64,000 bases of DNA from Macrostomum hystrix (GCA_950097015.1 CATNEN010000005.1:4526001-4590000); one strand, 5' to 3'. Shown: positions 3,596-58,700, counted from the stretch's first letter. The notes: a model not told the origin generated them from the letters alone. Numbers and translations: made by a program.

Positions 3596-6500
3596 TCACA
3601 GCTCCAGTAGAATCTCTCCGCCTTCACTTGCCAAACGGGTGACCGACTGCACATCTGATTGGGCACTGTCGAAATGGTGCGTCATTGCGAAGTTGTCTAT
3701 GGCCCAAGTTGATTGCCTAGCGGTCAGGCTGGGCATGACCTGATCCAGGCTTGTGATGCAACGACGAAATTTGAGACGGCCAGTTTTCAGATTAAGCCAG
3801 AGTTCGAGCCAACGCCGCTTCTGCTGAGGTAATTGTCGACGCCTCTTCGGTGATGGCGGCGATGTTGAGGTCTCATTGTCATCATAGTCGCTGTTGTCTT
3901 CACTACTACTACTACCACTACTACTACTACCAGAATTAGTATTATCTTTTAATGTTTTGCCAACGGATGCTGCGCCGTTGATAACAATCTGGCTGGAATC
4001 GTCTACAGTTTCAACCACAATCACCAGGGTGTCGATTAATCGACACTCGTCGATTAGAATGAAGCGAACAAAGCGTTGAACAAATTGACGACGCACAGGA
4101 GGACTGCGCAGGAAAGCTGGGACTGAAACAGCCAGCTCTTCAATATGGCAAAAGCTGCTGCTGCTTGTACGATTGCTAGGACCGTCGGATGTTGCTGGGC
4201 CATTATCACTGAATGCCCAGTTGAATGGGGCAGCGTATTCAAGATTTGCTGCTCCTCCTAATAATAATAAATCAATAAATAATTAATTGATTACACCTGC
4301 CCCATTTGGGCCAGATGTACAGCCAACAGCACAGCTGCAGCTATTGCGCGGCGCATCTGAAGGCTGCGTACAGCTGTTCAGTCCATGGACTGGGGGGGAC
4401 GCCACACCCATCCTCGATTATATCCCTGCTAATGCTGATTTAACAGTTGGGTGAACTGAACACAAATTGTTTCGGTGGAGTCTGGAATCGAACTCACAAC
4501 TTAAAGGTCGTCGGGAGTTCGATTCCTAGCTCGACTGGAACAATTTGTGTCTTTTAGCAAGGTGTTTAAGTTTACCCAGCTGTCAAATGGGTACCAGCAT
4601 TAGCTAGGGTAATTGAAGGTCGGTGTGGGTTTCCCCCCAGTCCATGGACTGAACAACGGATGAACACCTGCGGTCGTACTGTTGGCTGCCCAATTATAGT
4701 CAGACACGAGGATACAATGCGACAAGCGCCAACTAACCTCGCCTGCAGTAGAACATGGCAGTGCTGTGCGCGGAGCCAGTCAGGTCAGAATAATCGTAGA
4801 CTGGGAGTTCCTCGGAATCAGCGGAAGTGTACAACCGATGCGAATAGCTCAGATAGGCATTGTCAGTGTAGAGATAGTTGCACGGACTGCATGTAACAAT
4901 GCCAGATAGGCCTGTTAGAAGCTGTTCTCCGTTATCAGAGTTTAGCTTGGCAAAAGCATTACCAGCCTGTCTGTCGGTGTCAGCCAATAGCAGCGGGCCA
5001 AAATGGCAGCCAATCAGATCGCAGCAGCACGGACTAGGATATGGCTCATTATCTGGCGAATGCGAATGGCCGTCGCGTAGAATCGAGCGCCGATTTAAAC
5101 TCAGTCGCTGGGCGCGATAGAGATCGGTCGGAGTGAATTGGTTGAAATTGAGAACAGACGAAGTCGGATAGTACTGCGTGTACTTTAGAAATAGGCACAG
5201 ATCGCAGGGAAGCGTTGCGCCGATAGGGTTGGAATGGGAGAAGGTTCTGAAATATGGGTAAAATTAGAATTACTTCTAATATAAGTTTCAGATTTAAAAA
5301 ATATCTGATTAAACACAGGGTTTGTAGCCAAGTAGCAAAAAATAACAATGAGGTCAGAAGTTCGAATCTTTGCTCAACAGAGTGTCTGTCTCTATATCTA
5401 ACTATTTATCTGTCAATCTATCTGATTGATTCTAGAAAGAGGTCTTCTCTGTGTGCGTGGATCGTTGCATTTCGTCTACCTATTCCCAGGACCAGTGATA
5501 GAGTACTTTCTCTGCCTACGTTATATTGTTAATTTAAGTTTGAGCTGAAGCTAATACATTAATAAATCAAAAACCGTCAAAAAAGGCAGCTGTCAAGCGC
5601 CTTCACTGTTCGACTGGAACCAACGGTGCAGCATTTCTTACAGCAGGGCTGACCTGCCTGCTTTCAGGTGCTCGGCATCGGGGACTGCTGTTGATCAGAG
5701 TTCCCACCTGCCTGTCGCAGCCATTCTGCCTATCGAGTGCGTCCAACTGCACTTATGGTCCGATGAGACCACTTTTAGCTGGGTCTACTGCCTCTAAATA
5801 ATTGAACTTTTTTTTCACTGCCGCAGTACTAAAAACATGCAAGTTTTTTTAACTTGAGCCTTTTTAGTGCTCGTTCTGCTATTGGTTGAAACCATCTTAG
5901 TGTGTACACTTTACTGCCCCTCTAACTGGTTTGTACTGCAAGCCCTGACTTTGGTCATTCATTCTGCTAAAAGTACGTATGGGCTTAAGCCTATTCATGA
6001 ATATTAAATGTCTACTTTACTGTCAATATATAAGCTTGCTCAATCGTTTAAAAATAAACAGATCCGTCGATATTACTTAAAACGAAGAGGTCTTCTCTGT
6101 GTGCGTGGATCTTTGCGTTTCGTCTACGCTCATCTACGCTCGTATTTATCCTACTCGTATTTTCTTATGCAGGAGGTGTAATGACCGTTGTGTCTACATT
6201 GGAGAGACAAGAGTAGCCGAAAGTCCGACTGCAAGCCCACCTGAGCGACATTAGACTGGCAAAAGATACCCCGGTCTCACATTTTCGCTCTACAGGCCAC
6301 AGCCTGTTGGATTTACGGTTCATGGGTCTCTGGTACCTCAGCCCTGAATGTGAGACGCACAAAGAGGCAACTAAACGCAGGAGAAGAGACATGGAACTCA
6401 GACCCATTAATCTCCTGCAAACTCAGACCCAAGCTGACCTGAACTCCATTGACAATAACCGTAGTGCGTGCGGACCGCTCTGGACGCATTGTACACGAAA

Positions 6501-9500
6501 TCCGTTCGGTTATGGCTGACAATGCCAGTGACTTAAGCACAGTGGCAGCGTACACACGCTCGCGCTCTCTAAAGGACATTCAATGTCCATCCAAGCTAAT
6601 TCCATCCAAGCTGATAAATGACCAATAATTCGCCTTAACCATTGACAGGACTCTGGGTGCATGTGGCATTGCCTGTTTTATTTTTAACGTGCCCGTGTTA
6701 GCTAATTTTAAATGTACAGTTCTAACTTTAAACCAATACGGTTTTGAAACTTCCGTATTACAAGTGATCGCTTAAACAATTTATTTTTGTTTACCTTATC
6801 AAAATATACAGACCCTGAGAAAGGCCCATTTTTGGCAAAAAATGGGTCCATCGTAATATATACTCGCAGTTAAAATATCTGCATTTTAAAACATCTAGAC
6901 TGTGTGTGCGGCTTGCCTCTAAGGGGCTTTCGTCTATCTTCTCCCAGGACCAGTGCTCAGTGTTTTGGGCTTTTCGGCCTTTTTGGCTTTTCCTTTTTTT
7001 ACTTTAGGCTTCTATGCCCAACGACCAACGCTCGTGGTACTCAAGACGCCATGAGCACCGTGGTCGTCAAGAGTCAGACTGGGGCTACTCGGTGACAAAC
7101 CGTCCCTCAAGAATTAGCCCAGAAAGCCGACGGCGCCAAGAGAACACACGAGACCGCTCTCAAGACCAGTCAGGCCCGAGACGCTATCGTGAGGAATTCA
7201 GCTCACAACACACCGACAGACGAAACGGCAACAGAGTCCGAGGGAACCGCCCACAGAGTGGCACTGTGTGTGTGGTTTTTCCTTTTCGCATATCTATCTA
7301 TCAACAGAAGCGGCCCGCATTGCACGGCTCGTCAAACAGCTTTTCCGTTCAGCCCACCACCTCGAGAACTGGCATACGGTCCCACCGGGCGTGCAGCGTA
7401 AGACAAAACAACTAAAAAATTTTATCCGCCCTGCCATGCCATCGGACGCCTGAAAACCAACGCAGAGACGTGGGAGACCAATACACAGGACACTATGGAG
7501 TCCCACTACGAATCCTGCATCCTCCGTCTCTGGGCGGCGCTCGAGGAAGCAACTGCAACATTCAGCCAGAACGACATTCTCACCGGCTGGCAGATCGGTT
7601 ACCGATGGGCATCGAAGGACGCAGGGAGACGTTTTAACAGTTCTCCTATACAACTGATTGTCCCTGAGCTTAACCCCGAGCCAGGTAAGGCAAATGCCTC
7701 TGTTTCGCGAACAAACAACCATCCTAGGCCCAATGATGGGCTCGGGTCTTTAGTCAGTGAGTTGATCCAACAGACGGGTTCTACCCAATTAGAGGGCAGG
7801 CAATTAACCTCGATGATTTTGGATGACCCGACGGCGCATGAACAACTAGACCCTGAGTTTGCAAATCCCATGCAACGTGCACTGGACTGGTGAAGCTTTA
7901 ATTAAGAGCCCTGCTTACTCACTTACAATGAGGGAGTCAACTACCCTCGTACCACTGAGCCACAGCTCCAAGTACAAAGTTGCTAACCGCAGGGTCCAGT
8001 TGCCTGTACCCAGGGGCTGGACACGGGGGTGGTCTGTGACCAGATATCCCTACTTGCATCTGGTGAGATCGCCACTAACGCCCATCCAAGCATCTGTGAC
8101 ACACCCGCTGAGGTCAATTCGATCTGCGACCCGCAACCGCAGGGTCCAGTTGCCTGTGCCCAGGGGCTGGACACGGGGGTGGTCTGTGACCAGACATCCC
8201 CGCCTGCTAACACCGAGCATGACGTTGGCGGTCCCTGCCGTACTCGGCCTTCCACAGCCTTTACAACTGTCCACCGCGGAACAAAAAAGGACTGAAAACT
8301 CTCTCCACTGACAAAACACACTGTGGTGATTGGAGATGAGAGCCTGTCCCTTTCCGGGACCAAATACCCTGAAATTCAGTTTGAAATTTTTCCGAACCTG
8401 AAGGCCGAACACTTATCTAAAATCATGAGAGAACAAGCTGCCTCTCCGTGTTCACTAGCCAAAGCTGTGATCCTGTTCCCCAGGGGCCACGACCTTTCCA
8501 GGCAATTCGAGGGGGTTCTTGACAAGCAGCTAACGACAATCGTCAACCACTGTCGGAAGGCATTACCAAAGGCAAATACTTACAAACTAGACTTTGTGAT
8601 GCGCCGGACAACGTTCGAAAGACTGCTGAGAAAATGAACCGCCACCTACAGGACATCAACCGAAGGGACCACATCCGTCTCTCACGGATGTGCTAGAGTG
8701 CTAAAATCCGGTGGAGTCTACACTCGAAAAGGCGGGCACCGGCGTCAGTGTTGTATTCAACTTTCATGGCCCCGTAACCAACTGCAACTTCGGAAAAATG
8801 TGAATTGGAAGGTGAAATATCAACTGTGCGAACATTTGTTACTACCAAATAATTTGTAATGAACTGTGTACTGTGAACTACGCTTGCTATGTGCTTCTCT
8901 ACTTCCAAATCATATTCACTGTTTTTGTTGCATTCGTTAAATAAACTCGTTTCCTACAGTTTGAAAAGGCGTGCGGTAATGCCACCGCCATTACCGCACG
9001 CTTTTTGGACTTCTCTTAAGTCCAACGCATACGAAATCACCATAGACATTTGTCATTACCGCAGGCTAAAAAGTATTATACCGCAGCTAGGCGAGATGAT
9101 AATGTACATGGCCTGGACAGATCTGGCCATAAACTATAAAATTTTAGGAAACCAATAGACAGGCATGGCTCTCTAAACATATTCTGTGCCCTTTAAAATT
9201 CATGCTGGAGTTAAGAGTTGACTGCGGATGTACATATATTACATGCATTAGCAGAGCAGAGTCAACTTAAATATCTATATCTACAACTATGGACGATGTG
9301 CTCTTCACATCGGATTCTGACAGCGACACCGCCATCACAGACGATTCTGATCCAATGCAGTCTGCTGAAGTAGGAAACGATTTGCAGGAAAGTGGTGAAG
9401 ATGTCGCTATCGATGAAGGAGACGATTTGCAGGAAAGTGGTGAAGATGTCGCTATCGATGAAGAAGGAGACGATTTGCAGGAAAGTGGTGAAGATGTCGC

Positions 9501-12500
9501 TATCGATGAAGAAGGTGACGAGTGGATGGAAGTAGAGCCTGGCAATGATGTTGGCGGCGGTGGAATGAACTCTGTTGGCATTACTGGAATAAACCCAAGC
9601 AATGAGCTTCCTGACGATCCGGAAAACATTGAATTTTTTCTGAGACTATTCCTGACCAACCAGCTGCTAGACAGCATTGTGCAGTGGACGAACCCAAAGG
9701 CATGGTTCGAATATGAACAAACATCTCTCGACGGCCAAGAAATGCCGACAGTTCTAAAGTCATGGAAGGATACTAACCGTGACGAGATCTCTAAGCTTCT
9801 GGTCATGCACCTGTTCATGGGAATCTCCCGAAAGCCGGAATTACACGACTACTGGAGCATCAGTGACATTCACTGCACACCGTTTTTCCAGTCTCCATAT
9901 GCCCTCACACGTGACAGATTCAAACAGCTGCTCTTGTTTCTTCGGTTTTACAACGCACGAGAACCAGTCACGGATGATCCGCTGCACAAAATTCGGCCAC
10001 TAATTCAACTGGCTCAGCGGCTCTGCAGCAACGTTTATCAGCCAGAGCAGCAACTTAGTGTTGATGAGTCTCTCATTCTGTACAAAGGAAGGCTTCAGTT
10101 CAGACAGTGCATACTATCAAAGAGAGCACGAGTTGGTATAAAATTGTACTGCGCTTGTGAATCGACTTCTGGATATTTATACAGCTTTCTGGTGCACTCG
10201 ACTGCAGAAGAGAATTCCCGCTTTGGTGAAGACCTCGGCTGCGATCAACTGTCTCTGAGCGAGTGAATAGTAGTTAAACTGTGTAAGGATCTGCTTGATT
10301 TAGGCTACCACGTTTTCGTGGACAAGTGGTTTGCCTCTGCCAGACTTGCCAGTGTTCTGTACGAGCGCAGCACACTTTTCACAGGAACTGTTCGAGCCAA
10401 CCGCGGAGTGCCTTTGTCGCTCAGTGGACGTTGTCTTCATGAGAAAGCATCCTCTGCTAGCCATGACGATCTCAGAGCGGAAGGAGAGCGGCTTGAAGAC
10501 GATCCTCATGCTCGACACCCATGGCTCAGCTGACAAAGCCCAGGTACTGCGAATTCGCAAGAGCGGTAAAGTGGTGCTGGTGCAGAAGAGCGCATCGAAT
10601 TTGCTATTCAATCGCTGCATGGGAGGTGTTGACCGACTAGACGCCATGCTGAAGCCGTACGACAGCTGTCGAAAAACGTATAAGTAGTTTCACACGTTGG
10701 GATTGCACCTCTGCCTACACAATGCATGGGTTGTGTATTCAAAGAACGGTGGTCGCTTACCATTTTTAAACTTTCTGGAGCGATGCATTGTTTATTTGGT
10801 GGAATCGACTGGCCCTGAAAGGCTGAGAGCAGCGCCCAGGATGCTGACAGGTGTCGCTGCCCAGCAGGAACACCACTTTCCATCAAGGCTTCCACCAAAC
10901 GACTCCACACCAAGACCGGCAAAGCACTGCCGCGTGTGCTACAGCAGGGGCAATGCAAAGCGCACTGTTTTCTGCTGCACCGTGTGCCCAGGCGCCCCTG
11001 GACTTTGTCCCAGATCCTGCTTCGAGGAGTGGCATGCGAATCACAAAGTAACTAAAGCTACCATCATAGGATGCATTTCGAATGTATCTGAGTTATTGTC
11101 TGTTGCAAGCTGTTCTATATTTTCTTTACGATATAAAACTGTAGTTGGTTGGATCATAAAAGTTACTGCACATCGTAGAAAGGGGACCATGCATGCAAGA
11201 GCACATGCGCTGTAAATTGGTGACAGAATACCAGGTTGTTAAATTTTAATTTTATATGTTCTGCTAGGACAATTTGCCTAAACTGCAATCAGCTTTGTCT
11301 GGGTTTTGCTACCATGTTCATTTAAGCTTAACTTTGGAAAGTTTTTTCGCTAATTTTAAACCAATGTTGATGCGTATCCTGTTACCCTCAAATCTACTGC
11401 TATACAAAGCAAACTTGCATGTTCTGTTTTATATGAAATGGTTCACTGGCAGTCAGTAAAGTTGTATACTGTAGATCTCTTCTGAATTTTCACTAACACC
11501 TTTATTTATCCCTTTGCTGCTCTCACTGTCAAATTTGATAATTTTGAGCATGTGCTCTTATTTGGTTCTTTATCTTTTTTCTAGCATATGAATTAAATGC
11601 TTGCAATGCGCTTGGCTACAAAAAGTCGTTTTTTTCTCTCGTTAAAATAAACTACTAGCATTTTACATATCAGTCAGTCTGTATTTTGCTTATTCCTTCG
11701 CTCATATTCACTCGAAGTAAACTCGTGGCAGGTAAACGAATGCAAGATAGACACACTTAGCCGTAGTATCTAACTTGGCCAGCGTTTTTCGTCGCTTTTC
11801 GCTGTGCGCCTTCCGTGTGTTCTTCGCCATTTCGCCTCGCTTTGTGTTTGGCTGGTCACTAACGAGCATCCTTAAGAAACAAGGACACTCGGTCCACTCC
11901 ATCCGTAACGCCAAGAAATCAGCACTCATCCAACTTAGCTTTTTCACCGACCGCCAGTGGGACTTTGGCTTCCGCAACTGCAATAATGAAACCTGTCGGG
12001 TGTGTAGACAACACGGCTACTTCGGCCAGATCTGTCCAGGATTCATTTCCACCAAGATGATTTAAAGAATTTGCCAGAAGGTCCGCTGTGACTCCAGAAA
12101 CGTGGTTTATTCAATCCTATGCAGGAGCTGCAATGACCGGTGTGTCTACATTGGAGAGACAGGAGGGGCTCTCGAGGTCCGATTACAAGCCCACCTAAGC
12201 GACGTCAAACTGGCCAAAGATACCCCGGTCTCAAGACATTTTCGCTCTACAGGCCACAGCCTGTTGGATTTACGGTTCCTCAGCCCTGAATGTAAGACGC
12301 ACAGGGAGGCAACTCAACGGAGAAGAGACATGGAGCTCAAACTCATTAGCCTCCTACAAACTCAGATCCCTGCAGGTCTCAACTCCATTGACACTAATCG
12401 AAGTGCGTGCGTCCCTATAATCATTCCTTACATGGACCACTCTGGGCGCTTTGTACACAAAGTCCGTTCAGTTATGACTGACCATGCCAGCGATGTGAAC

Positions 12501-15500
12501 ACGGTGGCTGCGTACACCCGCGCACGTTCTTTAAAAGACATTTTATGTCCATCCAAACTCCCTCCGCTAATGAATGCTCAATAACTCACTTCAACCCTTT
12601 ACATGGCTCTAACTGCACGCGACAAAAATAAACTTATTTTTTCGAACCCATTGAACTTTTACGTGCATCTCATCAATAGTTTTAACCTCCTATGCGTATT
12701 TAAGCGCGCCTAAATAACAATCTCGTCAGTAACTAAAATATACCCTGAAGAAGGCACAGCTTTGGTCGAAAATTTGGTTCCTCATTAACTAAAACACCCA
12801 GCACTGTGTGCGTGTGGTTTTTCCTTTTCGCATATCCATCTATCTATCTTATCTTATCTATCTATATGGAGCAAGCTAATAGTTATTTTGGGAAGAGATG
12901 TCACACTGTCATATTAAATGCTGTCATATTAAATGCATATTGAATGTCACACTGTCATTATAGAAATGTTTATACTCTCTTGAGAATTCGCAACTAGATA
13001 AATTGCGTGTCTAAAGTACTAATCTAGCACTTTTGAGTTTCACCAAGTAGATGCTGCTACTCTAACATCGCTAATTGAAAAAATGTCCGAAACACACAGC
13101 CAGCTGATGTGTAAATTAATACATAACTCATCAGATGTTTTGGACTAGCAGTAAAATATAAGCTTTAGGAGTAATTCTGTCCAAATTACGATTATGTTAC
13201 TTGTACAATTAGTTTTGGATTTTTTTCGGCTTAATCAAGAGTAGGGTTACAATCCTGTAAGTCTGAGTTAGAGAGTGGCATTGTACTATACTCGTAGTTT
13301 CCCGCGTCAGAGTGAATTCACTGAAAATTTTAATCTAGAGTGGCAATACTTTCATCTATTCTCAGGAGAGATAAGAACGGGAGGGATGAGACACGGGAGA
13401 GATGAGACATGGGAGAGATAAGACACGGGAGAGATGAGACACGGGAGAGATGAGAAACGGGAGAGATGAGAAACGGGAGAGATGAGAAACGGGAGAGATA
13501 AGACAGGTTAGAGATGAGAAACGGGAGAGATGAGACACGGGAGAGATGAGACACGGGAGAGATGAGACACGGGAGAGATGAGACACGGGAGAGATGAGAC
13601 AGGGTAGAGTTGAGACACGGGAGAGATGAGACACGGGAGAGATGAGACACGGGAGAGATGAGAAACGGGAGAGATGAGACAGGGAGAGATGAGAAACGGG
13701 AGAGATAAGACAGGGTAGAGTTGAGACACGGGAGAGATGAGACAAAGGAGAGATGAGACACGGGAGAGATGAGACAGGGAGAGATGAGAAACGGGAGAGA
13801 TAAGACAGGGTAGAGTTGAGACACGGGAGAGATGAGACAGAGGAGAGATGAGACACGGGAGAGATGAGACAGGGTAGAGATGAGAAACGGGAGAGATAAG
13901 ACAGGGTAGAGTTGAGACACGGGAGAGATGAGACACGGGAGGGATGAGACAGAGGAGAGATGAGACAGGGTAGAGATGAGAAACGGGAGAGATGAGACAC
14001 GGGAGAGATGAGACACGGGAGAGATGAGAAACGGGAGAGATGAGACAGGGAGAGATGAGAAACGGGAGAGATAAGACAGGGTAGAGATGAGAAACGGGAG
14101 AGATAAGACAGGGTAGAGTTGAGACACGGGAGAGATGAGACACGGGAGAGATGAGACACGGGAGAGATGAGAAACGGGAGAGATGAGACAGGGAGAGATG
14201 AGAAACGGGAGAGATAAGACAGGGTAGAGTTGAGACACGGGAGAGATGAGACAGAGGAGAGATGAGACACGGGAGAGATGAGACAGGGTAGAGATGAGAA
14301 ACGGGAGAGATAAGACAGGGTAGAGTTGAGACACGGGAGAGATGAGACACGGGAGAGATGAGACAGAGGAGAGATGAGACACGGGAGAGATGAGGCACGG
14401 GAGAGATAAGACACGGGAGAGATGAGGCACGGGAGAGATGAGACTGGGTAAGAGTAGGTTTTGAAAGTTGGGTGTAGTTTTGGGAGCAATTGGAAGGCCG
14501 TATCTGGCCAGCAGGCGAAGGTTGCTGAACCCTGATGTCAAGTGACATTGCCGCAGATTCAAATGAAATGCACAATGTCTAGAACACAGACCTGCCAGAC
14601 AGCGTAAATGACAATCGTTGATTCAATGATTGTCGCTCAGCCAATCCCAAGCCTTCCGCGGACAGTTGCTGATCGTCTTCAGAGTCGGTGTACTGATGGT
14701 CATCATCGTCATTGTTTGCCGAATTCCGTCTACGCAGATTGTCCTCCACAACTAGCTGGTCATAGACGTCGTCGCACAGTTTATCACCGAATGCATTCTC
14801 GTAGAATTTCAAGCTATCATCCGGATGATAATTGTAGGCCAAGCCGCACGGACAGAGGCGCAATCGGCATAGTCGATCTCCGGGAAATTTCTTACGCAAC
14901 GATTGCTGACTAGTTGAATCGTTAAGGCCTACTTTTATAAGACGAATCACACCGAAACTGGTCGAATCGCAGGTAATTAAATAGTCGCCTTTGAAAGCGA
15001 CACGCGAGGCGCCAAGCGCGCCTAGCGACATTGCGGGCAGTGTGACCGACTTTCTACCGTCGGAGACTACATCGGATACTGACGAGGACATTTGGAAGCG
15101 ATCGGATTCCTGCAGTGGGATTTTAGTAGAAATTCAGGAGAATGATTAAAATAAAATTAGTTAAATGACTTGTGGACTGCGATTAGCAGTGCGAAAATTT
15201 GGGAGACTGAGATCATCAGTTAAGGGGATTTGGAAGACTAGGATTATCGACATTTAGAGGATATGGGAGACTAGATTAATCAGTTAGGGAATTTGAGAGA
15301 CTGTGATTATCAGCTAGAGGATTAAGGAGACTAGGATTATCAGTTAGAGGATTAAGGAGACTAGGATTATCAGTTAGAGGATTAAGGAGACTAGGATTAT
15401 CAGTTAGAGGATCTTAGCTACTAAGATTATCTGATAGAGGATCAGAGAGACTGCGATTATCAGTAAGAGGATTAAAGAGAAAAGGATTATCTGAAAGAGG

Positions 15501-17834
15501 ATTTTATAGACTGGGATTATCAGATAAAGGATTTAAGAGACTAGAATTACCGGTTAAAGGATTTTTAAGATTTCAGGATTTATTCGAACTGTAGGATTTG
15601 GGAAAAGTTTAACAGGCAAAAAGGTGATTTCAAACTAGATTCTAAGAATCGCCTACACAAGAAAGTAAGAAATGTAATGTAAGTACAAACTTACAAACGA
15701 TTCAGAAGCGGCAGGCGCTGATGCAGAAGGCTCCTCTAATTGACATAGCCAAACGTGCCGGCGACAGGTGACAATTCGGCGGGCCGCCAAATCGCTGGCA
15801 CACTGACGACAACCATTAGAGAGGCTGGGCAGACTGATCAGTATACGACGATGAGGCAGTACGGGTGTTGACACGCAGGCGATGCTGCAGCCGTTCTGGC
15901 CACCATCGCCATGATGATGACGCGACTCAGTCACACAGATTGGCTGATGTCTCATTAGGGCCAGAGGAGAAATGTCGTAGGCCACGGCTAGATTGGCACT
16001 AATAAAGGAGATTGATGGGGATGATAACTGGGTCTAGGGGGTTAGAGAATATGAGTCTAGGGGATTATAGACTGCAAGTCTAGGGGATTAGAGACTGCAA
16101 GTCTAGGGGATTAGAGACTGCAAGTCTAGGAATTATAGACGGCAAGTCTAGGGGATTAGAGACGGCAAGTCGGGGGGATTAGAGACTGCAAGTCTAGGGG
16201 ATTAGAGACTGCAAGTCTAAGGGATTAGAGACGGCAAGTCTAGGGGATTAGAGACGGCAAGTCTAGGGGATTAGAGACTGCAAGTCTAGGGCATTAGAGA
16301 TTGCAGGTCTAGGGGATTAGAGAATATGAGTCTATGGGATTATAGACTGCAAGTCTAGGGGATTAGAGATTGTAGGTCTACAGGATTAAAGACAGTAAGT
16401 CTAGAGGATTAGAGACTGCAAGTCTAGGGGATTAGAGACGGCAAGTCTAGGGGATTAGAGACTGCAAGTCTAGGGGATTAGAGACTGCAAGTCTAGGGGA
16501 TTAGAGACTGCAGGTCTAGGGGATTATAGACGGCAAGTCTAGGGGATTAGAGACGGCAAGTCAAGGGGATTAGAGACTGCAGGTCTAGGGGATTATAGAC
16601 GGCAAGTCTAGGGGATTAGAGACGGCAAGTCAAGGGGATTAGAGACTGCAAGTCTAGGATATTAGAGACTGCAGGTCTAGGGGATTAGAGATTGCAGGTC
16701 TAGGGGATTAGAGAATATGAGTCTAGGGGATTATAGACTGCAAGTCTAGGGGATTAGAGACGGCAAGCCTAGGGGATTAGTGAATAAAATTCTAGGGGGT
16801 TAGAGAATATATGTCTAGGAGATAAGAGAACACAAGTCTATTGGATTAGAGAGAATACGTCGAGGGGATTAGAGAAAAAAAGTTTAAGGATTGGAGAAGA
16901 TAAATCTATGGGATAAGGGAATAAGTCCAGGGGATTAGAGAATATAAGAAGACTAGGGTATAAGGGAAAATTTCTAGGCAATTAAAATTCCTTTCTAGGG
17001 ATCCGAACTTATACTCGTACAACTAAAGAAAATAGGTGTATAAGTTCCGGAAAATACATAAAAGAAATCTGAAAATAGACAGACAACAACAGAAATAGAA
17101 AGTAGGTATCTAGGACGGGGCTGAGTGGCAGAGCGGTTAATGCGTTTGTATCTTGCACCTAAGTCCCCGAGTTCGATTCCGCGGCGAGGCCACAATTATT
17201 TGCCCTCCCCCCAAGTAGAGAAGGCTTGGGGGCTTGTCGTGCAATTCACGCCCTTGTGGGCCAACCTCCAAGGTTGTTGAGTCAACCTCCAGAATGTTGA
17301 ATAGTGTACACTGCCTGACGATGAGAAAGTCAGGTCAGATATGTACACACCTGTGTGCGTGCGTGCTCAGGAGTCAGCCAAATGGGCAGAATTACCAAAT
17401 TATGTGCCATCGCCTGCAGCACTCCTGCAATTATTATTATTAGGCATCTAAGGGAATCAGAATAGACACTTAGTATTGGTAAGCATTAATTATTGATCAG
17501 GGGCAAAAGAAACTGTGTTGACAAACCTAGGCTTAGCCGATTTCAAATCGACATGCCACAGCATTAGCTGGTATTTGTTAGCAAACAGCTCCTCATCGCC
17601 GTCCTGATTGAATCCGACGCCGTCAGAGCCAGAGCCAGATCGATAGGAGCACAACAGTTGACCGTTTGCTAAGAAACCCAGAAACACGTTGGACATCCAA
17701 TCGGTTGGCGCTGCGTTATCAAATAGGCTAGATAGTTTCAGGCGAATAACAGCGCTAAATGATCGCCGATGACATCTAGACTGTTGTCTACAATGAATTA
17801 GGCCGAGCTCTCTGTTTAGAAGCCGACGCTGCAT
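3596..17834 (-). CDS. DCAF15: DDB1- and CUL4-associated factor 15, about 766 aa. Exons 17834-17527, 15998-15695, 15109-14592, 5246-4738, 4257-3596
   Basis: N-terminal VFLGFLANGQLLCSYRSGSG..KYQLMLW resembles DCAF15 IFLGFSKCGRYVLSY. Also HRRILIS..CRQC, CLFLKYTQYYP, HIEELAV and TLVIVVETVDDSSQIVING...WLNLKTG match my recollection of DCAF15 motifs. Five GT-AG exons are phase-consistent (308+304+518+509+662 nt). Confidence 0.8.
4293..4665. mobile_element. Palindromic foldback/MITE-like element filling most of DCAF15 intron 4
   Basis: Imperfect inverted arms about 130 bp long: CAGTCCATGGACTGGGGG at 4379 versus CCCCCAGTCCATGGACTG ending at 4651, and GGAATCGAACTC (4484-4495) versus GAGTTCGATTCC (4515-4526) around a 19-nt loop. 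The left flank is homologous to 56786-56855. Confidence 0.75.
6165..6910 (+). pseudogene. Degenerate 3' portion of a Penelope-like element (GIY-YIG, C-terminal motif, 3' UTR), tandem upstream copy
   Basis: Aligns by eye to 12118-12800 (CVYIGET, HL.DI.LAKDTPV, DLRFMGLWYLSPEC, LNSID, VAAYTRSRSLKDI), with frameshifting indels and a degenerate hammerhead-like motif at 6811-6848. Confidence 0.85.
7014..8692 (+). mobile_element. 5' half of a Penelope-like retroelement ORF: Arg-rich N-terminus, HHLENW/RWA region and SGNH-hydrolase-like domain; frameshifted
   Basis: Joining ORFs 7014, 7268 and 7495 gives ...ARLVKQLFRSAHHLENWHTVPPGVQRK..L.NFIRPAMP..LKTNAETWE....ESHY...TGWQIGYRWASK, which I recall from N-terminal regions of aquatic-animal PLEs. 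8323-8637 reads VVIGDESL...QFEIFPNLKAEHL...VILFPRGHD, an SGNH-like pattern. Family call is from memory. Confidence 0.6.
8693..11871 (+). mobile_element. piggyBac (PGBD4-like) DNA transposon, decayed; ends not resolved
   Basis: Transposase relic at 9289-11215 flanked by non-PLE sequence. A TTAA at 11872-11875 coincides with resumption of the PLE reading frame, but no convincing TIR pair was found. Confidence 0.6.
9289..11215 (+). pseudogene. piggyBac transposase pseudogene (DDD triad and C-terminal Cys-rich domain)
   Basis: Motifs SVDESLI, KRARVGIKLY, FVDKWFAS, TGTVRANR, MGGVDRLD and CRVC...C..CP..PGLC...CFEEWH. Interrupted by TGA at 10264-10266, a frameshift near 10440 and TAG at 10685-10687. 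Confidence 0.93.
11876..12870 (+). mobile_element. 3' half of a Penelope-like element: linker, Cys knuckle, GIY-YIG endonuclease, C-terminal motif, 3' UTR and (TATC)n tail
   Basis: One frame with a single TAA (12063-12065): SIRNAKKSALIQ...GFRNCNNETCRVC...RCDSRNVVYSILCRSCNDRCVYIGETGG...RLQAHLSD...PVSRHF...ELKLISLLQTQIPAGLN, then PIIIPY...VAAYTRARSLKDILCPSKL; stop at 12584. Tail tatctatc at 12830-12866. Confidence 0.88.
12742..12778 (+). ncRNA. Candidate minimal type I hammerhead ribozyme in the PLE 3' UTR
   Basis: acc-CTGAAGA (12745-12751), stem II aGGC..GTC, GAAA (12768-12771), palindromic AATT stem III, then T-GGT closing stem I with ACC. Matches the minimal dimeric hammerheads described in PLE pseudo-LTRs. 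Confidence 0.6.
13375..14445. repeat. Minisatellite, 18-bp unit GAGATGAGACACGGGAGA, in DCAF15 intron 3
   Basis: Directly visible tandem array with extreme purine skew; same family as 22190-22860 and 39630-40800. Confidence 0.95.
15190..15580. repeat. Minisatellite, 30-bp unit GGAGACTAGGATTATCAGTTAGAGGATTAA, in DCAF15 intron 2
   Basis: Visible tandem array related to the 1836-2560 unit. Confidence 0.9.
16035..16970. repeat. Minisatellite, 23-bp unit AGACTGCAAGTCTAGGGGATTAG, in DCAF15 intron 1
   Basis: Visible tandem array with a degenerate right end. Confidence 0.95.
17117..17441 (+). mobile_element. tRNA-derived SINE, copy A (DCAF15 intron 1)
   Basis: A box TGGCAGAGCGG, B box GTTCGATTCC, shared body and (ATT)n tail; TSD-like TAGGTATCTAGG / TAGGCATCTAAGG. 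Confidence 0.85.
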
Positions 17835-38306: not shown

Positions 38307-39629
38307 CTTTCTTAAGATTGCCCTCGTGGCCACTAGTGGATAGTTTTTTGATTGTGTCCTAATACTAAAAAACGCGTTCTGTATAATATGTGAAGATTTT
38401 GTTAAATAAAATAAGCTACTATTATCAGTGGAGTAATAATTTTTTCTCTTTTTAGCTTCAGTCTGCTTTTTAATTCATTCCTTCTGTCGAATATCTATAT
38501 ATGCAGTTGAGAAAAACTATTGCGTTGTTCAGTACTGAAAATCGGAATGAACTTCGATACATATTTTTCATAATAATCAAATTAAAGTTTCTTCGATGCA
38601 AGTAAATGTACATCTCAAATTAATTTTTTGCAGAACTAGGCCCCTACTTCAGTAGACAGACTTATTGTATATATTGTTTGGACAAAAAAAGAAAATACGT
38701 AAGTCGAAAAACAGCATATTGTGTTTATTTTATACACGTGTTTTTCCCTTTACACTCTGGTTGTAATGGTTTTTTGTCTTATTTTAACTGAAACAATTGA
38801 TATTTATTATTTAATCATTGCCTCTAGTTAAAAAAACCGACAGCACGCAATTATAAATTATGAGCATATTATTACTATTTTATATATGTTCTTAATGTGT
38901 TGACTGAACATTCGTTACTTTCAATACTTCTTTTCATGATTTTCATGTCTGTTAGAGCAAGCTATACGAGCGTACATCCAGGTCTGCTTTCATACTTGCA
39001 CAGCACAATGTTCTTGTTCTGTTTGCTTTGAATTTTTTTGTTGTTAGAAACTTTCTGAAGCATCTATATATGCATTAGAAAAAATATAAAGTCACAAGGA
39101 AATATATTTCAAGTCCAATCTAAAATAGCTCGTTGTTATTTCACTGATAACAAGCATAAATTATGCAATGTGTTCTCTTGGAAATTTTTGCTTTATTTTT
39201 ATCTGAGGCAGGCTATAAATGAAATTCGTTGCTAATTAATTCTCGATTAGGAGTTGTAGGAAGGATAAGTCAAGAAAAAAATCACCAGCAATGAACTGGA
39301 TAGATACTAACAGGATAAAGTGTTACATCTGTTAATCTTATTATATGGTCTTCGGGACTATAGTTTGATACTGATAGTTACCAGCTACATTAGTCCAGTT
39401 GTGAAGACATAAATAAGGCAGATTAAACCAGTCGACCATTTTCATATTCTCTTTGCATGGAACTCTCGAGTCAAAAGCAATGGCTTGAACTTTTTTTTAT
39501 CAAAGTTGACAACTGACTTCACAGCAAAGATCGGGAAACCGACCAGCGGGCCAGATACGATCGGCGAAGCTTCCAAAACCTTGGTCCTTGGACTCATGGC
39601 CTCTTTCAATTGCTGCACATGCACCCTGC

Positions 39630-40800
39630 CCCTGCCTCACCTCTCCCGTCTCAAATCTCCCCTGACTCATCACTCCCGTGTCACCTCTCCCCTGCCACAT
39701 CTCTCCCGTTTCTCACCTCTCCCCTATCTCGAATCTCCCCTGCCTCATCTCTCCCCTATCTCGAATCTCCCCTGCCTCATCTCTCCCGTGTCTCACCTCT
39801 CCCCTATCTCGAATCTCCCAAGCCTCATCTCTTCCGTGTCTCATCTCTCCCGTGTCTTATCTCTCCCCTGTCTCATCTCCCGTGTCTCATCTCTCCCCTG
39901 CCTCACCTCTCCCGTCTGAAATCTCCCCTGACTCATCTCTCCCGTGTCTCACCTCTCCCCTATCTCGAATCTCCCATGTCTCATCTCTTCCGTGTCTCAT
40001 CTCTCCCGCGTCTTATCTCTCCCGTGTCTCATCTCTCCCCTGCCTAATCTCTTCCGTGTCTCATCTATCCCGTCTTATCTCCTTTGTCTCATCTCTCCCG
40101 TGTCTCACCTCTCCCCTGACTCAAATCTCCCCTGACTCATCTCTCCCCTGACTCATCTCTCCCGAGTCTCATCTCCCGTCTCATCTCTCCCGTGTCTCAC
40201 CTCTCCCCTATCTCGAATCTCCCAAGCCTCATCTCTTCCGTGTCTCATCTCTCCCGTGTCTTATCTCTCCCCTGTCTCATCTCCCGTGTCTCATCTCTCC
40301 CCTGCCTCACCTCTCCCGTCTGAAATCTCCCCTGACTCATCTCTCCCGTGTCTCACCTCTCCCCTATCTCGAATCTCCCATGTCTCATCTCTTCCGTGTC
40401 TCATCTCTCCCGCGTCTTATCTCTCCCGTGTCTCATCTCTCCCCTGCCTAATCTCTTCCGTGTCTCATCTATCCCGTCTTATCTCCTTTGTCTCATCTCT
40501 CCCGTGTCTCACCTCTCCCCTGACTCAAATCTCCCCTGACTCATCTCTCCCCTGACTCATCTCTCCCGAGTCTCATCTCCCGTCTCATCTCTCCCGTGTC
40601 TCATCTCTCCCGAGTCTCATCTCCCGTCTCATCTCTCCCGTGTCTCATCTCTCCCGTGTCTCATCTCCCGTGTCTCATCTCTTCCGTGTCTCATCTCTCC
40701 CGTGTCTCATCTCCTCCGTGTCTCATCTCTCCCGTGTCTCATCTCCCGTGTCTCATCTCTCCCATGTCTCATCTCTCCGGTGTCTTATCTCTGCCGTGTC
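39630..40800. repeat. Minisatellite of the TCTCATCTCTCCCGTG family (about 18 bp) with a 404-bp higher-order duplication
   Basis: Visible array; identical 63-aa pseudo-ORFs at 39944 and 40348 show the 404-bp offset. Confidence 0.93.
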
Positions 40801-41459
40801 TCACCACACGAATTGCTTCCTTTGGGCTGAGATTCCAAGCCCCGAACTCTCGGTCAGAAGTCTGAAGCTCATAACACTAGGCACTAGGTTACAGGCTCAG
40901 TTAGCTTGGAAAGAAACAAATTAGTGCAAAATATTTAAATAAGTTACTTAACACGATAATTGGTAGAATAGTATCGTACTGCGCTAAACAACACGAGCTA
41001 GGAATTGTCTTGAAAGTACATTTTTATTGTAGCTACACTGTGTATTTTGTTTGTTATTTTAATTAGTATGCAAACGAAAATTGCACAGCAGTTTCAGGAT
41101 AGGGACAGAAGCTATATTTTTATTTAGGGCTTAACAGACACTTTAAATTGTAAAAAAATTCACGAAACAAATGCAAACAATAGGGCCAACACTGGTTTTA
41201 TATGGAGATATCAGAGTCATCATGGGTACTAAGGCTTCTGTTATAAAGATTCTGTCAATCAGATATTAACGGTAAGTTACTGGTACAACAGTCATTGTGA
41301 CGAATTTACTACTAGATTATAGAATATTAACGCACCTCTTTTTGGGTAGACGCTTGTTTAATATACATTAGTAAAGAAACTTTTCTAAAAAAAGCATAGA
41401 ATAAGAAATAAAGGACGAGAAAATGTGGGAAGAAAGGGCGACTAGAGGGTTAGAAAGAA

Positions 41460-55739: not shown

Positions 55740-58700
55740 ATGGCAACTGCGTCATTTCATGCGTCCCAATTGACTGGCGGTGAGCAGCACGATCATAGCG
55801 ATCTGTTGGACAACGAAGATCTTGACTCCGATCTGTCTAGCGATGGCGAACGCTTGCCGGTAGTTCAGGGCACCCTGAGCAAATGGACTAATTACATCAC
55901 AGGCTGGCAGAGCAGATTCTTCGTGCTGAAAGACGGCACACTAAGCTATTTCAAAAGTCCAGAAGAGTCCGCATTCGGCTGTCGCGGCGCCATCTCGCTG
56001 ACTCGCGCCCTGATAACGCCGCACACCCTTGACGAGAATCGTTTCGACGTGTGCGTCGGCGAACACATCTGGTACCTGAGATGCGACAGTCGTGACTTGC
56101 GCAACACCTGGATTCGCGCTCTAGATAGTCACCGCACCTGTCAGGAGTCTGGCCTTGGATCCGAGTCTAGCCTCAAGCGACACAACAGCCTGCTGAGCTT
56201 AACATCCGGCAGTCAGAGCATCGCTAGCCAAGGCAGCTTTCGACGGGGTCACGGAGTGCGCGAGAAACTAGCAGAGATTGACACATTCAGAGAGATGCTA
56301 GTTAGACAGGTGGACACTTTGCAGGGCTACTTTGATCTGTGCGGTCAGCTGGCTGCCGCTCCGCGCCCCTCCGTTGACATCGAAGACGATGTTGTTGTTA
56401 ATGGTCGCAGTGATTTGGTTGATCACGACAGCGTCAGCAACAATGGCCACATCGAAGCGAACGGTGACGATACAGATGAAGAAGACGATCCGGCTGCGGC
56501 CACCATCACTGCGGCGACTGTCGCTGCAACTGGCGCTGCTTCGCAGTCTGCCGGTAGTAACACTGGCGGCACCTCACTTTTTTCATTCTTCAGTAGGCGG
56601 AGTGCCGCCACTTCTGCCGCCTCGCCAGTTAGAGGCGACTCGACCGCCGCAGCGTCAGCAGCCCAGAGTCAAAGCAAATCGCCAGTTGATTACGATAGCT
56701 ATGTTCGGCTGCTGAGACAGCACGGTGGACACGCTGTGGACTTCAAAGGCGAAGCTAATACCTTTCGGGTTAGTTCATTAAATAACTGCCATTCTTGCCA
56801 AATGAGCAGCCGACAGCAGTCGCAGCTATTGCGCGGCGTATCTGAAGGCTGCGTAAAATAATAATAATTAAAATAATTGCACGAGGGCTGCGGGCAATGG
56901 CACACCATTTGGTGACACTAGACCCGCAGCCAGCCAGGAGGCAATTCTGCCCATTTCGCTGACTCCTGAGCACACACGCACACAGATACTGTACGCAGGC
57001 ACACGCTCACACAGGTGTGTACATCTGCCCTGACTTTCTCATCTTCAGGCAGTGTACCCTAGCATTGTGCCTTAGAGGTTAGTCCTCAAGGGCGTAAATT
57101 GTAAATTGCACGACAATGGATGTTGGTGCTTCCATCACATCTTAGGCTGCGTACAGCTAGCTGTTCAGTCCATGGACTGGGGGACTCTGCCCCAATCGTC
57201 AATTATCTACAACTGAGGGGTCGGTGGCAGAGCGGTTAACGCGTTTGCCTCTCGCACCAAGGTCCATGAGCTCGATTCCACGGCGAGGCCACATTTATTT
57301 GGGGCGCAGCCGCAGAGAGAAGGCTTGGGGGCTTGTCGTGCAATTTACGACCTTGAGGGCCAACCTCCAAGGCACAGTGAGAGTGTACACTGCCTGACGA
57401 TGAGAAAGTCAGGGCAGATGTACACACCTGTGTGAGCGTGTGCCTACGTACAGTATCTGTGTGCGTGTGTGCTCAGGAGTCAGCGAAATGGGCAGAATTG
57501 CCTCCTTGCTGGCTGCGGGTCTAGTGTCACAAAATGATGTGCCATTGCCCACAGCCCCCCTCAATTATTATTATTATTATTATCTACAACTGATGCTGGC
57601 AACCGTTTAACAGTTGGTCGGAAGCAGTGCAGATTTATGCCTGTTGCTTAAGTATAGACAAGATGTATGGAAATTATAACTATAGATTCAAAGGCTGCGT
57701 ATTGCAGTTCAGTCCGTGGACTGGACTACGCTTAAGGAATAAAGTGTCTCCTGCGGATTAATATTTGAACTCCTTAAACTCTTTAAAAACATCACCTAAA
57801 TTTTGGCTGCATTATCTAGGCCACCACAGCGGGCATTATTCATCAAATGTCCAGCTGCCTAGAGCTAATGACGCAACGCGAGGAACAATGGAAGAAGCGC
57901 CTAGACAGAGAGATGGAACGCAGGCGCAAACTCGAAGATCTGGTGCGTCAGCTGAGACACAAACTGGAATTAGCCGAGAAGCGAGCCGGCGATCCCATGG
58001 GGCCAGACTTCGAGGAGGGACCGTGCTGTCAGCTGGACGAAGAGGAATTCTTCGACGCTATCGACGCCCAGTTAGACAAGATGGACATCGACGCCAGCAA
58101 TATGAGCCGGTTGAGACAGGCCCGACTGCCCAATCACAGCTTGGACCCGGCGCATCCTCTAACCGAGGAGATTATGCGAGTGTGCCAATCGCATTGGGAT
58201 AATTGGGGCGCCTCGTGCGCCGGTATGGAACTGCTGGAGAAGGACGGCGAGTTGGCTGTTTATAGGAAACAGCTGGAGGAAGAGGGTGAGTTGCCTCCCT
58301 GCTCACCATTGTGCTCATAGCTTTAACAGTGGAAAGACTGTTTCAAATAACCACATCATTTTTTTCTGTATCTCCCAAAATATTTAACCAATCGGCATAA
58401 AAATCCAGAACACGGGCAAACATTTCAAAATCACTAATCGCAATTGTCGAGATTCGCGGCATAATATTTCTGCTCACAAAATTTCATCATGTAACCGTGT
58501 GTCGTCAATTATTGTTAAATATCTTAGATTGTTGAAATTGTTCAGAGCAATGTTGTTCTTGTCATCAGGGTCTTCGACAAGGGTGGGGATTTTTTTATTC
58601 AACGTGGTGGACATTGACGAAAATCATTCATTCGATTTTGGAGCTATAGTGAACTAGGCAGTTAATATTTGAAATACAACCTCTGTCTTTCTACTGTTAA

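Follow-up and report, generated by a model that had tools for sequence, protein, structure and literature searches.

The window analysed here is a stretch of 64 kb of Macrostomum hystrix DNA (C5:4526001-4590000 in an assembly of 220 Mb and 42 contigs). Between positions 6085 and 12866 it carries what is very probably a nest of long-dead copies of a Neptune-type Penelope-like element (PLE), in which the missing reverse transcriptase (RT) is a trait of this single locus and not of a family. The PLE remnants and the sequences lodged between them are as follows. ORF stands for open reading frame, UTR for untranslated region, EN for endonuclease, LTR for long terminal repeat and MITE for miniature inverted-repeat transposable element; L numbers denote copies at other loci.

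6085..6127, + strand: PLE terminal tail-like motif before the upstream 5'-truncated copy; 95% direct repeat of 5437-5479
6163..6650, + strand: degenerate GIY-YIG remnant, a pseudo-LTR-like tandem partner; 85-93% identical to the EN of other copies
6651..7013, + strand: 3'UTR of the upstream unit, then the unit junction (6900-6955) and the following unit's 5'UTR; 77-87% identity to the collinear L037 and L002
7014..8692, + strand: PLE ORF1 pseudogene with Arg-rich N-terminus, helical region, two repeats spaced by 150 bp and C-terminal SGNH-like domain
7265..7302, + strand: 38-bp PLE 3'-terminal tail within ORF1, in place of ~25 nt; 95% identical to 12807-12844
8323..8692, + strand: SGNH-fold domain, catalytically dead, C-terminus truncated (alignment, profile, AlphaFold2 model)
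8693..8934, no strand: unique filler, unmatched elsewhere in the genome search (query positions 134-375)
8935..9104, no strand: interspersed repeat, short and MITE-like, containing an internal hairpin; 96-100% identity in at least 6 further copies
~9101..11334, + strand: piggyBac remnant, transposase with one frameshift and one in-frame stop; ends placed from homology only
11267..11786, no strand: dispersed repeat, possibly related to the piggyBac end; C38:8268120-8268640 at 89%, three C7 copies at 75-78%
11791..11865, no strand: short dispersed repeat adjoining the PLE 3' fragment; at least 5 copies, 76-89%
11859..12065, + strand: end of the ORF2 thumb and RT-EN linker with CX4CX2C knuckle (homology start, translation)
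12066..12584, + strand: coding region of the GIY-YIG endonuclease, shortened by a small in-frame deletion (Pfam, identity to intact ORF2)
12585..12806, + strand: 3'UTR with a hammerhead-like motif at ~12743-12780, helices I and II weakened (motif comparison)
12807..12866, + strand: 38-bp terminal tail (12807-12844) running into (TATC)n (12836-12866)

The ORF1 remnant is heavily damaged. Region 7014-8692 aligned with residues 124-649 of the intact ORF1 of the C37 copy (tblastn, E 6e-93) and contains 4 in-frame stops, at least 3 frameshifts and the 38-bp insertion at 7265-7302. Pfam returned nothing for the window's own ORF1 pieces and no significant family for intact ORF1. With the C37 copy as reference, the sequence ends 43 codons short of the ORF1 stop; these 43 codons are missing together with codons 1-519 of the ORF2 frame, which amounts to ~1.6 kb (~1.43 kb when measured against L036). 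The inserted tail is not present in the collinear copies L002 and L037. Such a tail in the ORF1 of another copy would be either an insertion with extreme 5' truncation or a junction made by template switching. An internal duplication in ORF1 (7985-8057 and 8135-8207, 150-bp spacing) encodes (P/R)VACAQGLDTGVVCDQTS, which also occurs twice in the ORF1 of the young sister family described below.

PLE homology resumes at exactly 11859 in every comparison with other copies. The Cys knuckle CNNETCRVCRQHGYFGQIC was read from the translation of 11859-12587, and a premature TAA lies at 12063-12065, upstream of the GIY-YIG region. Pfam detected GIY-YIG at 12102-12584 (E 0.001, below the gathering score), the window EN is 57% identical to the C-terminal EN end of intact ORF2 (tblastn), and its DNA is 82-84% identical to that of other copies. 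The GIY-YIG domain of a canonical endonuclease-positive (EN+) PLE is present in the window copy. The original prediction had placed linker, Cys knuckle and GIY-YIG at 11876-12584; all three are there, but the PLE homology begins at 11859 and not at 11876. The (TATC)n tail that it described was found at 12836-12866, and this microsatellite was most likely the target site. Long (TATC)n stretches, visible as ORFs of YLSI repeats, also flank other 5'-truncated copies.

The absence of RT motifs from the window, also claimed earlier, was confirmed for the PLE type, as tblastn with two intact ORF2s matched the 64 kb only from residue ~560 onward. The other large ORFs of the window gave no RT; short ORFs were not exhaustively searched for RT fragments of long interspersed nuclear elements (LINEs) or LTR elements. 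A PLE-type RT as found in canonical EN+ PLEs (N1-N3/DKG, RT motifs 1-7 and thumb) is lacking in the window copy and present in its family. In DNA searches of the genome, the 5' half (7303-8692) gave 14 matches and the 3' half (11876-12870) gave 32. Further protein searches were carried out with the PLE RT and the ORF1 C-terminal domain. By DNA and protein searches together, seven other loci with 5'-half homology were found, and a PLE RT lies downstream on the same strand in all seven (C38:20.34M, C37:3.206M, C38:4.607M, C38:16.217M, C1:6.640M, C38:31.462M and C32:1.456M). At C38:20.33M (L035/L002) the halves are separated by the PLE N-domain, the RT and a nested Ty3/gypsy element, and at C38:31.46M (L036) by 1.43 kb of coding sequence for the DKG motif and RT. 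The RT motifs LVTLDVESLYTNIP, FLQIKGTSMG and YIDDIF were read in L035 and L036, and ORF2 of the C24 copy matched Pfam RVT_1 at 4.5e-9. Since RT lies downstream in every other ORF1-bearing locus found, these results point to a single RT-deleted locus rather than to an RT-less family, in line with the first of the two alternatives offered in the original prediction, that the RT was deleted.

Its second alternative was an endonuclease-only, non-autonomous PLE family consisting of ORF1, knuckle and GIY-YIG, which would be moved in trans by RT-encoding relatives. The two halves do share order and orientation, and non-autonomous PLE derivatives reduced to their 3' ends are known in Chlamys (PMC8557442). 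However, the ORF1-to-knuckle/EN junction has no second copy in the genome among the 14 matches of the 5' half and the 32 of the 3' half, and it is filled by 3.2 kb of unrelated repeats. The coding parts are also broken (the 4 stops and several frameshifts of ORF1, the premature stop in the EN frame), and both window hammerheads are mutated. A search of both halves against the same assembly had been proposed as the check, with an RT between the halves in other copies as the outcome that would speak against such a family; this is the outcome obtained. An RT-less family is extremely improbable and, as far as the genome search is complete, appears already refuted on the sequences compared. The locus is common transposon debris: a decayed, nested copy of an already known type of element, the two-ORF Neptune-type PLE with an SGNH ORF1.

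The layout of the complete element was read from intact relatives: pseudo-LTR, 5'UTR, ORF1, ORF2, 3'UTR and tail. The sister copies at C37 and C38:4.6M each have two long ORFs. ORF1 of the intact sister is 653 aa long when counted from its first ATG, with its stop 82 nt past the opening of the ORF2 frame; its N-terminus is rich in Arg, its C-terminus forms an SGNH-fold domain, and it also contains a conserved helical region. ORF2 is read in the -1 frame relative to ORF1 and encodes the N1-N3/DKG region, RT, CX4CX2C linker and GIY-YIG. Region 7014-8692 had been described as an N-terminal ORF region. It is indeed a PLE coding remnant, but since the intact sisters have an ORF1 and an ORF2 in the -1 frame, it is a separate ORF1 and not the N-terminus of the RT protein. 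Within the 82-nt overlap of the two ORFs (L014:2387-2468), an A_AAA_AAC heptamer is located in the right register at L014:2429-2435 (C37:3206693-3206699), where a -1 slip yields an ORF2 reading KKLDSSG...; it is the predicted -1 frameshift site of the sister family. PLE ORF1 may be set off by a frameshift with a pseudoknot (Craig et al. 2021, PMC8557442). In the C37 copy, positions 1-292 duplicate the element's own 3' region.

In public data, 314 ORF1 homologues were found at E<=0.001, with two conserved regions (residues ~85-200 and ~460-633). In other organisms, ORF2s of 722-735 aa with Pfam DUF8422 and HTH_animal matches directly follow ORF1 homologues; the 735-aa ORF2s also match RVT_1 and GIY-YIG and occur in tandem arrays. 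The linker of the Neptune/Nematis type (PMC8557442) is represented by CNNETCRVC in the window and in other copies. By its linker knuckle and ORF1 layout, the family is probably of the Neptune type. Nested in the PLE copy L035 is an intact-looking Ty3/gypsy gag-pol ORF of 1469 aa (L035:4422-8831, - strand; C38:20335421-20339830) that ends in a long (SAGQ)n-type repeat.

A second partial PLE, a 5'-truncated 3' end at 6085-7013, had been missed in the earlier description. Its tail motif at 6085-6127 is of the same class as the motifs at 6900-6955 and 12803-12844. Region 6163-6650 matched ORF2 residues 584-756 (tblastn) and, in pieces, 12115-12559 at 76-100% identity. The collinear order EN-3'UTR-5'UTR-ORF1 in the window is repeated at C32 and C38 and is the typical partial-tandem PLE arrangement. 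The partial-tandem (pseudo-LTR) structure and the tail of 30-40 bp known from canonical EN+ PLEs are both found at the locus.

Several points weigh against the reading of the locus as a nest of dead copies with a purely local loss of RT. The genome search scored best candidates only, and strongly degraded RT-less copies may have escaped it; the breakpoints at 8693 and 11859 are known from the assembly alone. Further, the upstream EN is 92.7% identical to L035 and only ~83% identical to the downstream EN, and is thus nearer to L035 than to its neighbour, so the two are not twin pseudo-LTRs of one insertion. Identity to L002/L037 is ~89% to the left of the 38-bp tail and ~78% to its right, a difference blurred by region-specific rates. 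From the EN mismatch and this drop across the tail, at least two insertion events are involved at the locus.

The course of events can be outlined as follows. A 5'-truncated 3' end (6085-7013) lies head-to-tail with an ORF1 (7014-8692) that breaks off before its stop, and PLE sequence is picked up again in the distal thumb/linker of ORF2, at 11859. The missing stretch of 1.4-1.6 kb contained all RT motifs, the N-domain and the frameshift region, as well as the end of ORF1. It might have gone by an internal deletion or rearrangement in one copy, with nested insertions arriving later. In the other option there was no deletion within a copy: a 3'-truncated tandem fragment (6085-8692) would have been followed by an independent 5'-truncated insertion of another subfamily (11859-12866) into a nearby (TATC)n, by chance in the same order and orientation. 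PLEs are typically 5'-truncated (PMC8557442), as is L038, the copy closest to the 3' half (88-95%); the unique segment 8693-8934 could be host DNA that was there from the start, and the subfamily signals of the two halves differ. On the other side, the two halves show similar identity to L035 (78% versus 82-83%), and the tail inside ORF1 at 7265-7302 shares its type with the terminus at 12807-12844 (95%), which hints that 7303-12844 may once have formed a single insertion unit, joined to an older fragment. A single copy that lost its interior is moderately favoured; two independent fragments are a possible but less likely history. By either history the RT loss is still confined to a single locus, with no RT-less family.

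The gap of 3.2 kb between the halves consists of at least 5 different sequences, as determined by genome searches with both gap borders. The repeat at 8935-9104 contains an inverted repeat (8964-8981/8989-9006). Near-identical copies of this repeat of 160-170 bp occur across contigs, and it may be a recently active element of the MITE type or resembling a short interspersed nuclear element. The piggyBac transposase was recognised by Pfam DDE_Tnp_1_7 (E 9e-40, 9289-10266) and zf-Tnp_2 (E 5e-7, 10697-11215), and its relatives in the genome include C30:566238-568214 at 79-91% identity. A search for inverted repeats gave no convincing pair of terminal inverted repeats (TIRs) to mark the piggyBac TIR/TTAA ends.

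The original prediction had piggyBac sitting where the RT should be. A transposase remnant does lie in the gap, but the filler is composite and only ~9101-11334 of it is piggyBac. A reading that goes further than its suggestion of an RT deleted at the piggyBac junction would have the insertion itself remove the RT, for example by aberrant transposition or excision repair. The location of piggyBac inside the gap agrees with this. However, other sequences keep it apart from both PLE breakpoints, no PLE remnants are present at its flanks, and no TTAA-flanked TIRs were recognised. With at least 5 unrelated pieces of filler and no adjoining PLE, a causal role of piggyBac is undemonstrated and seems quite unlikely.

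The SGNH-like domain at 8323-8692 had been proposed by pattern only and was borne out by independent comparisons. In a multiple alignment of ORF1 C-terminal regions, the canonical blocks GDS, G, GxN and DxxH line up. The profile of this alignment matched PDB 4c1b, the ZfL2-1 LINE ORF1p esterase, at E 9.5e-5 and PAF-acetylhydrolase (PAF-AH) at 1e-3. An AlphaFold2 model was made of the L035 orthologue, which is 77% identical to the window domain (pLDDT 77.8, pTM 0.74). When this model was searched against PDB with Foldseek, the top matches were all SGNH/GDSL enzymes (TM 0.70-0.73, E 1e-4). Among the ORF1 homologues, several gave Pfam matches to Lipase_GDSL_2 that stayed below the gathering score, the best at 1.8e-6. 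A word-based protein search with the ORF1 C-terminal region gave no match, the homologues having come from a full HMMER search; the SGNH link is visible through homologues and the profile, not through Pfam on a single ORF1. The assignment of the SGNH fold to the ORF1 C-terminal domain is sound.

The window copy and its genomic relatives read GDE for GDS, followed by PWGQD/PRGHD and DLVSL, and have neither the catalytic Ser nor the His. Elsewhere, both Ser and DxxH are kept in 94 of 126 ORF1 homologues and both are absent in 13 of the 126. With no catalytic Ser and no DxxH His, the window domain, judged from its residues, is a pseudo-esterase. A metagenomic ORF1 homologue of 734 aa (P0111) has a NADAR domain (Pfam 6e-12) in addition to the C-terminal SGNH domain, a modular variation of PLE ORF1s.

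A hammerhead-like 3'UTR was also part of the original prediction. The 37-nt hammerhead core is the best-kept non-coding stretch, with 95% identity across 10 or more copies in the genome. In well-kept copies the sequence is CC-CUGA(A/C)GA-A-GGCC...GGCC-GAAA-(AUUU/UAUU)-GG, with a GGCC/GGCC helix II and a palindromic AAUU or AUAU segment. Helix I shows a compensatory change between families (GACC/GGUC versus UACC/GGUA). The minimum-free-energy fold of the well-kept copies has the hammerhead type-I topology. In the upstream motif of the window (~6812-6850), the core is CUGAGAA...AAAA where CUGANGA...GAAA is expected, and neither window copy adopts a hammerhead fold on RNA folding. An Rfam scan of 5000-14000 at E<=1 returned no hammerhead, just a spurious match to a long non-coding RNA. 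The motif appears real for the family, but it is mutated in both window copies and without an Rfam match there. The conserved core fits a predicted minimal hammerhead of the dimeric type in the 3'UTR of the family, comparable to the dimeric PLE hammerheads (PMC8557442).

An SGNH ORF1 in Neptune-type PLEs was already published in 2013: Schneider et al. list SGNH esterase ORF1s in Neptune1_Ren (Amphimedon) and BRIDGE1_FR (Takifugu), by their RepBase names (PMC3905857). Like these Neptune-clade elements, the present family carries an SGNH domain at the C-terminus of a separate ORF1, which precedes the ORF for RT and GIY-YIG. Pseudo-LTRs or tandem copies, tail, 5' truncation, a predicted 3' hammerhead motif and microsatellite bias are also shared with Neptune-clade PLEs (PMC8557442). 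The SGNH domain described here differs in having neither the Ser (GDE) nor the DxxH His, and the window copy is in addition without RT and pseudogenised. The best match among solved structures, the CR1/L2 LINE ORF1p esterase ZfL2-1 (4c1b), likewise has an SGNH fold at the C-terminus of a gag-like ORF1, but it belongs to the non-LTR class with an apurinic/apyrimidinic (AP) endonuclease, is catalytically active and has low sequence identity to the PLE ORF1. The EN-minus Athena-L PLEs/Terminons of bdelloid rotifers carry catalytically inactive GDSL derivatives (PMC5408684). They resemble the present family in having a PLE-associated SGNH-like ORF without catalytic residues; Athena differs in lacking GIY-YIG, in being telomere-associated and in carrying its SGNH-like domain at other ORF positions. 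Decay of transposable elements in general produces the same picture of internal coding loss at a single locus, nested elements, stops and frameshifts; there is no substantive difference, and this is the ordinary reading.

Ten or more distinct mini-satellite arrays occur in the window. A 16-bp satellite, GGAGAGATGAGACACG, follows the PLE closely at 13365-14444 in ~68 copies. A related 16-bp array at 39629-40803 is reverse-complement-like to this satellite, with the motif on the opposite strand. Tandem arrays of 30 bp at 15161-15554 and 1862-2558 have the common core GGAGACT(G/A)GGATTATCAG. On the + strand, a 373-aa ORF at 55740-56861 contains a PH domain (Pfam 3e-14) and is probably an exon-rich part of a host gene.

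The young sister family is represented by copies with a mutual identity of 98.1-99.8%:

C37:3204265-3209584 (L014+L046): young sister PLE copy
C38:4603851-4609170 (L044+L013): young sister PLE copy
C1:5549626-5553276 (L045): young sister PLE copy
C38:16.215M (L008/L009/L050): young sister PLE copy

Among the copies at C37:3.206M, C38:4.606M and C1:5.55M, mutual identity is 99.6-99.8%. The first two have ORF1 and ORF2 intact, and the third is 5'-truncated with a different flank. The SGNH domain of the sister family's ORF1 is without the catalytic Ser and His. There is about an even chance that this family transposed recently despite a dead SGNH domain, so that esterase chemistry would be dispensable for this EN+ PLE lineage and the domain would be structural, serving in binding or assembly. 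The window copy itself is no more than a dead relative of this lineage.

The locus itself carries little weight for wider biology. For annotation, the PLEs of this genome are two-ORF Neptune-type elements whose ORF1 is easily taken for an N-terminal domain, and decay at a single locus can mimic RT-less elements. Tandem partial copies blur boundary calls, and several repeats may together make up the filler of such a gap as a mosaic. The one mildly new point is a young PLE lineage whose ORF1 SGNH domain is catalytically dead; it bears on what the esterase of retrotransposons does.

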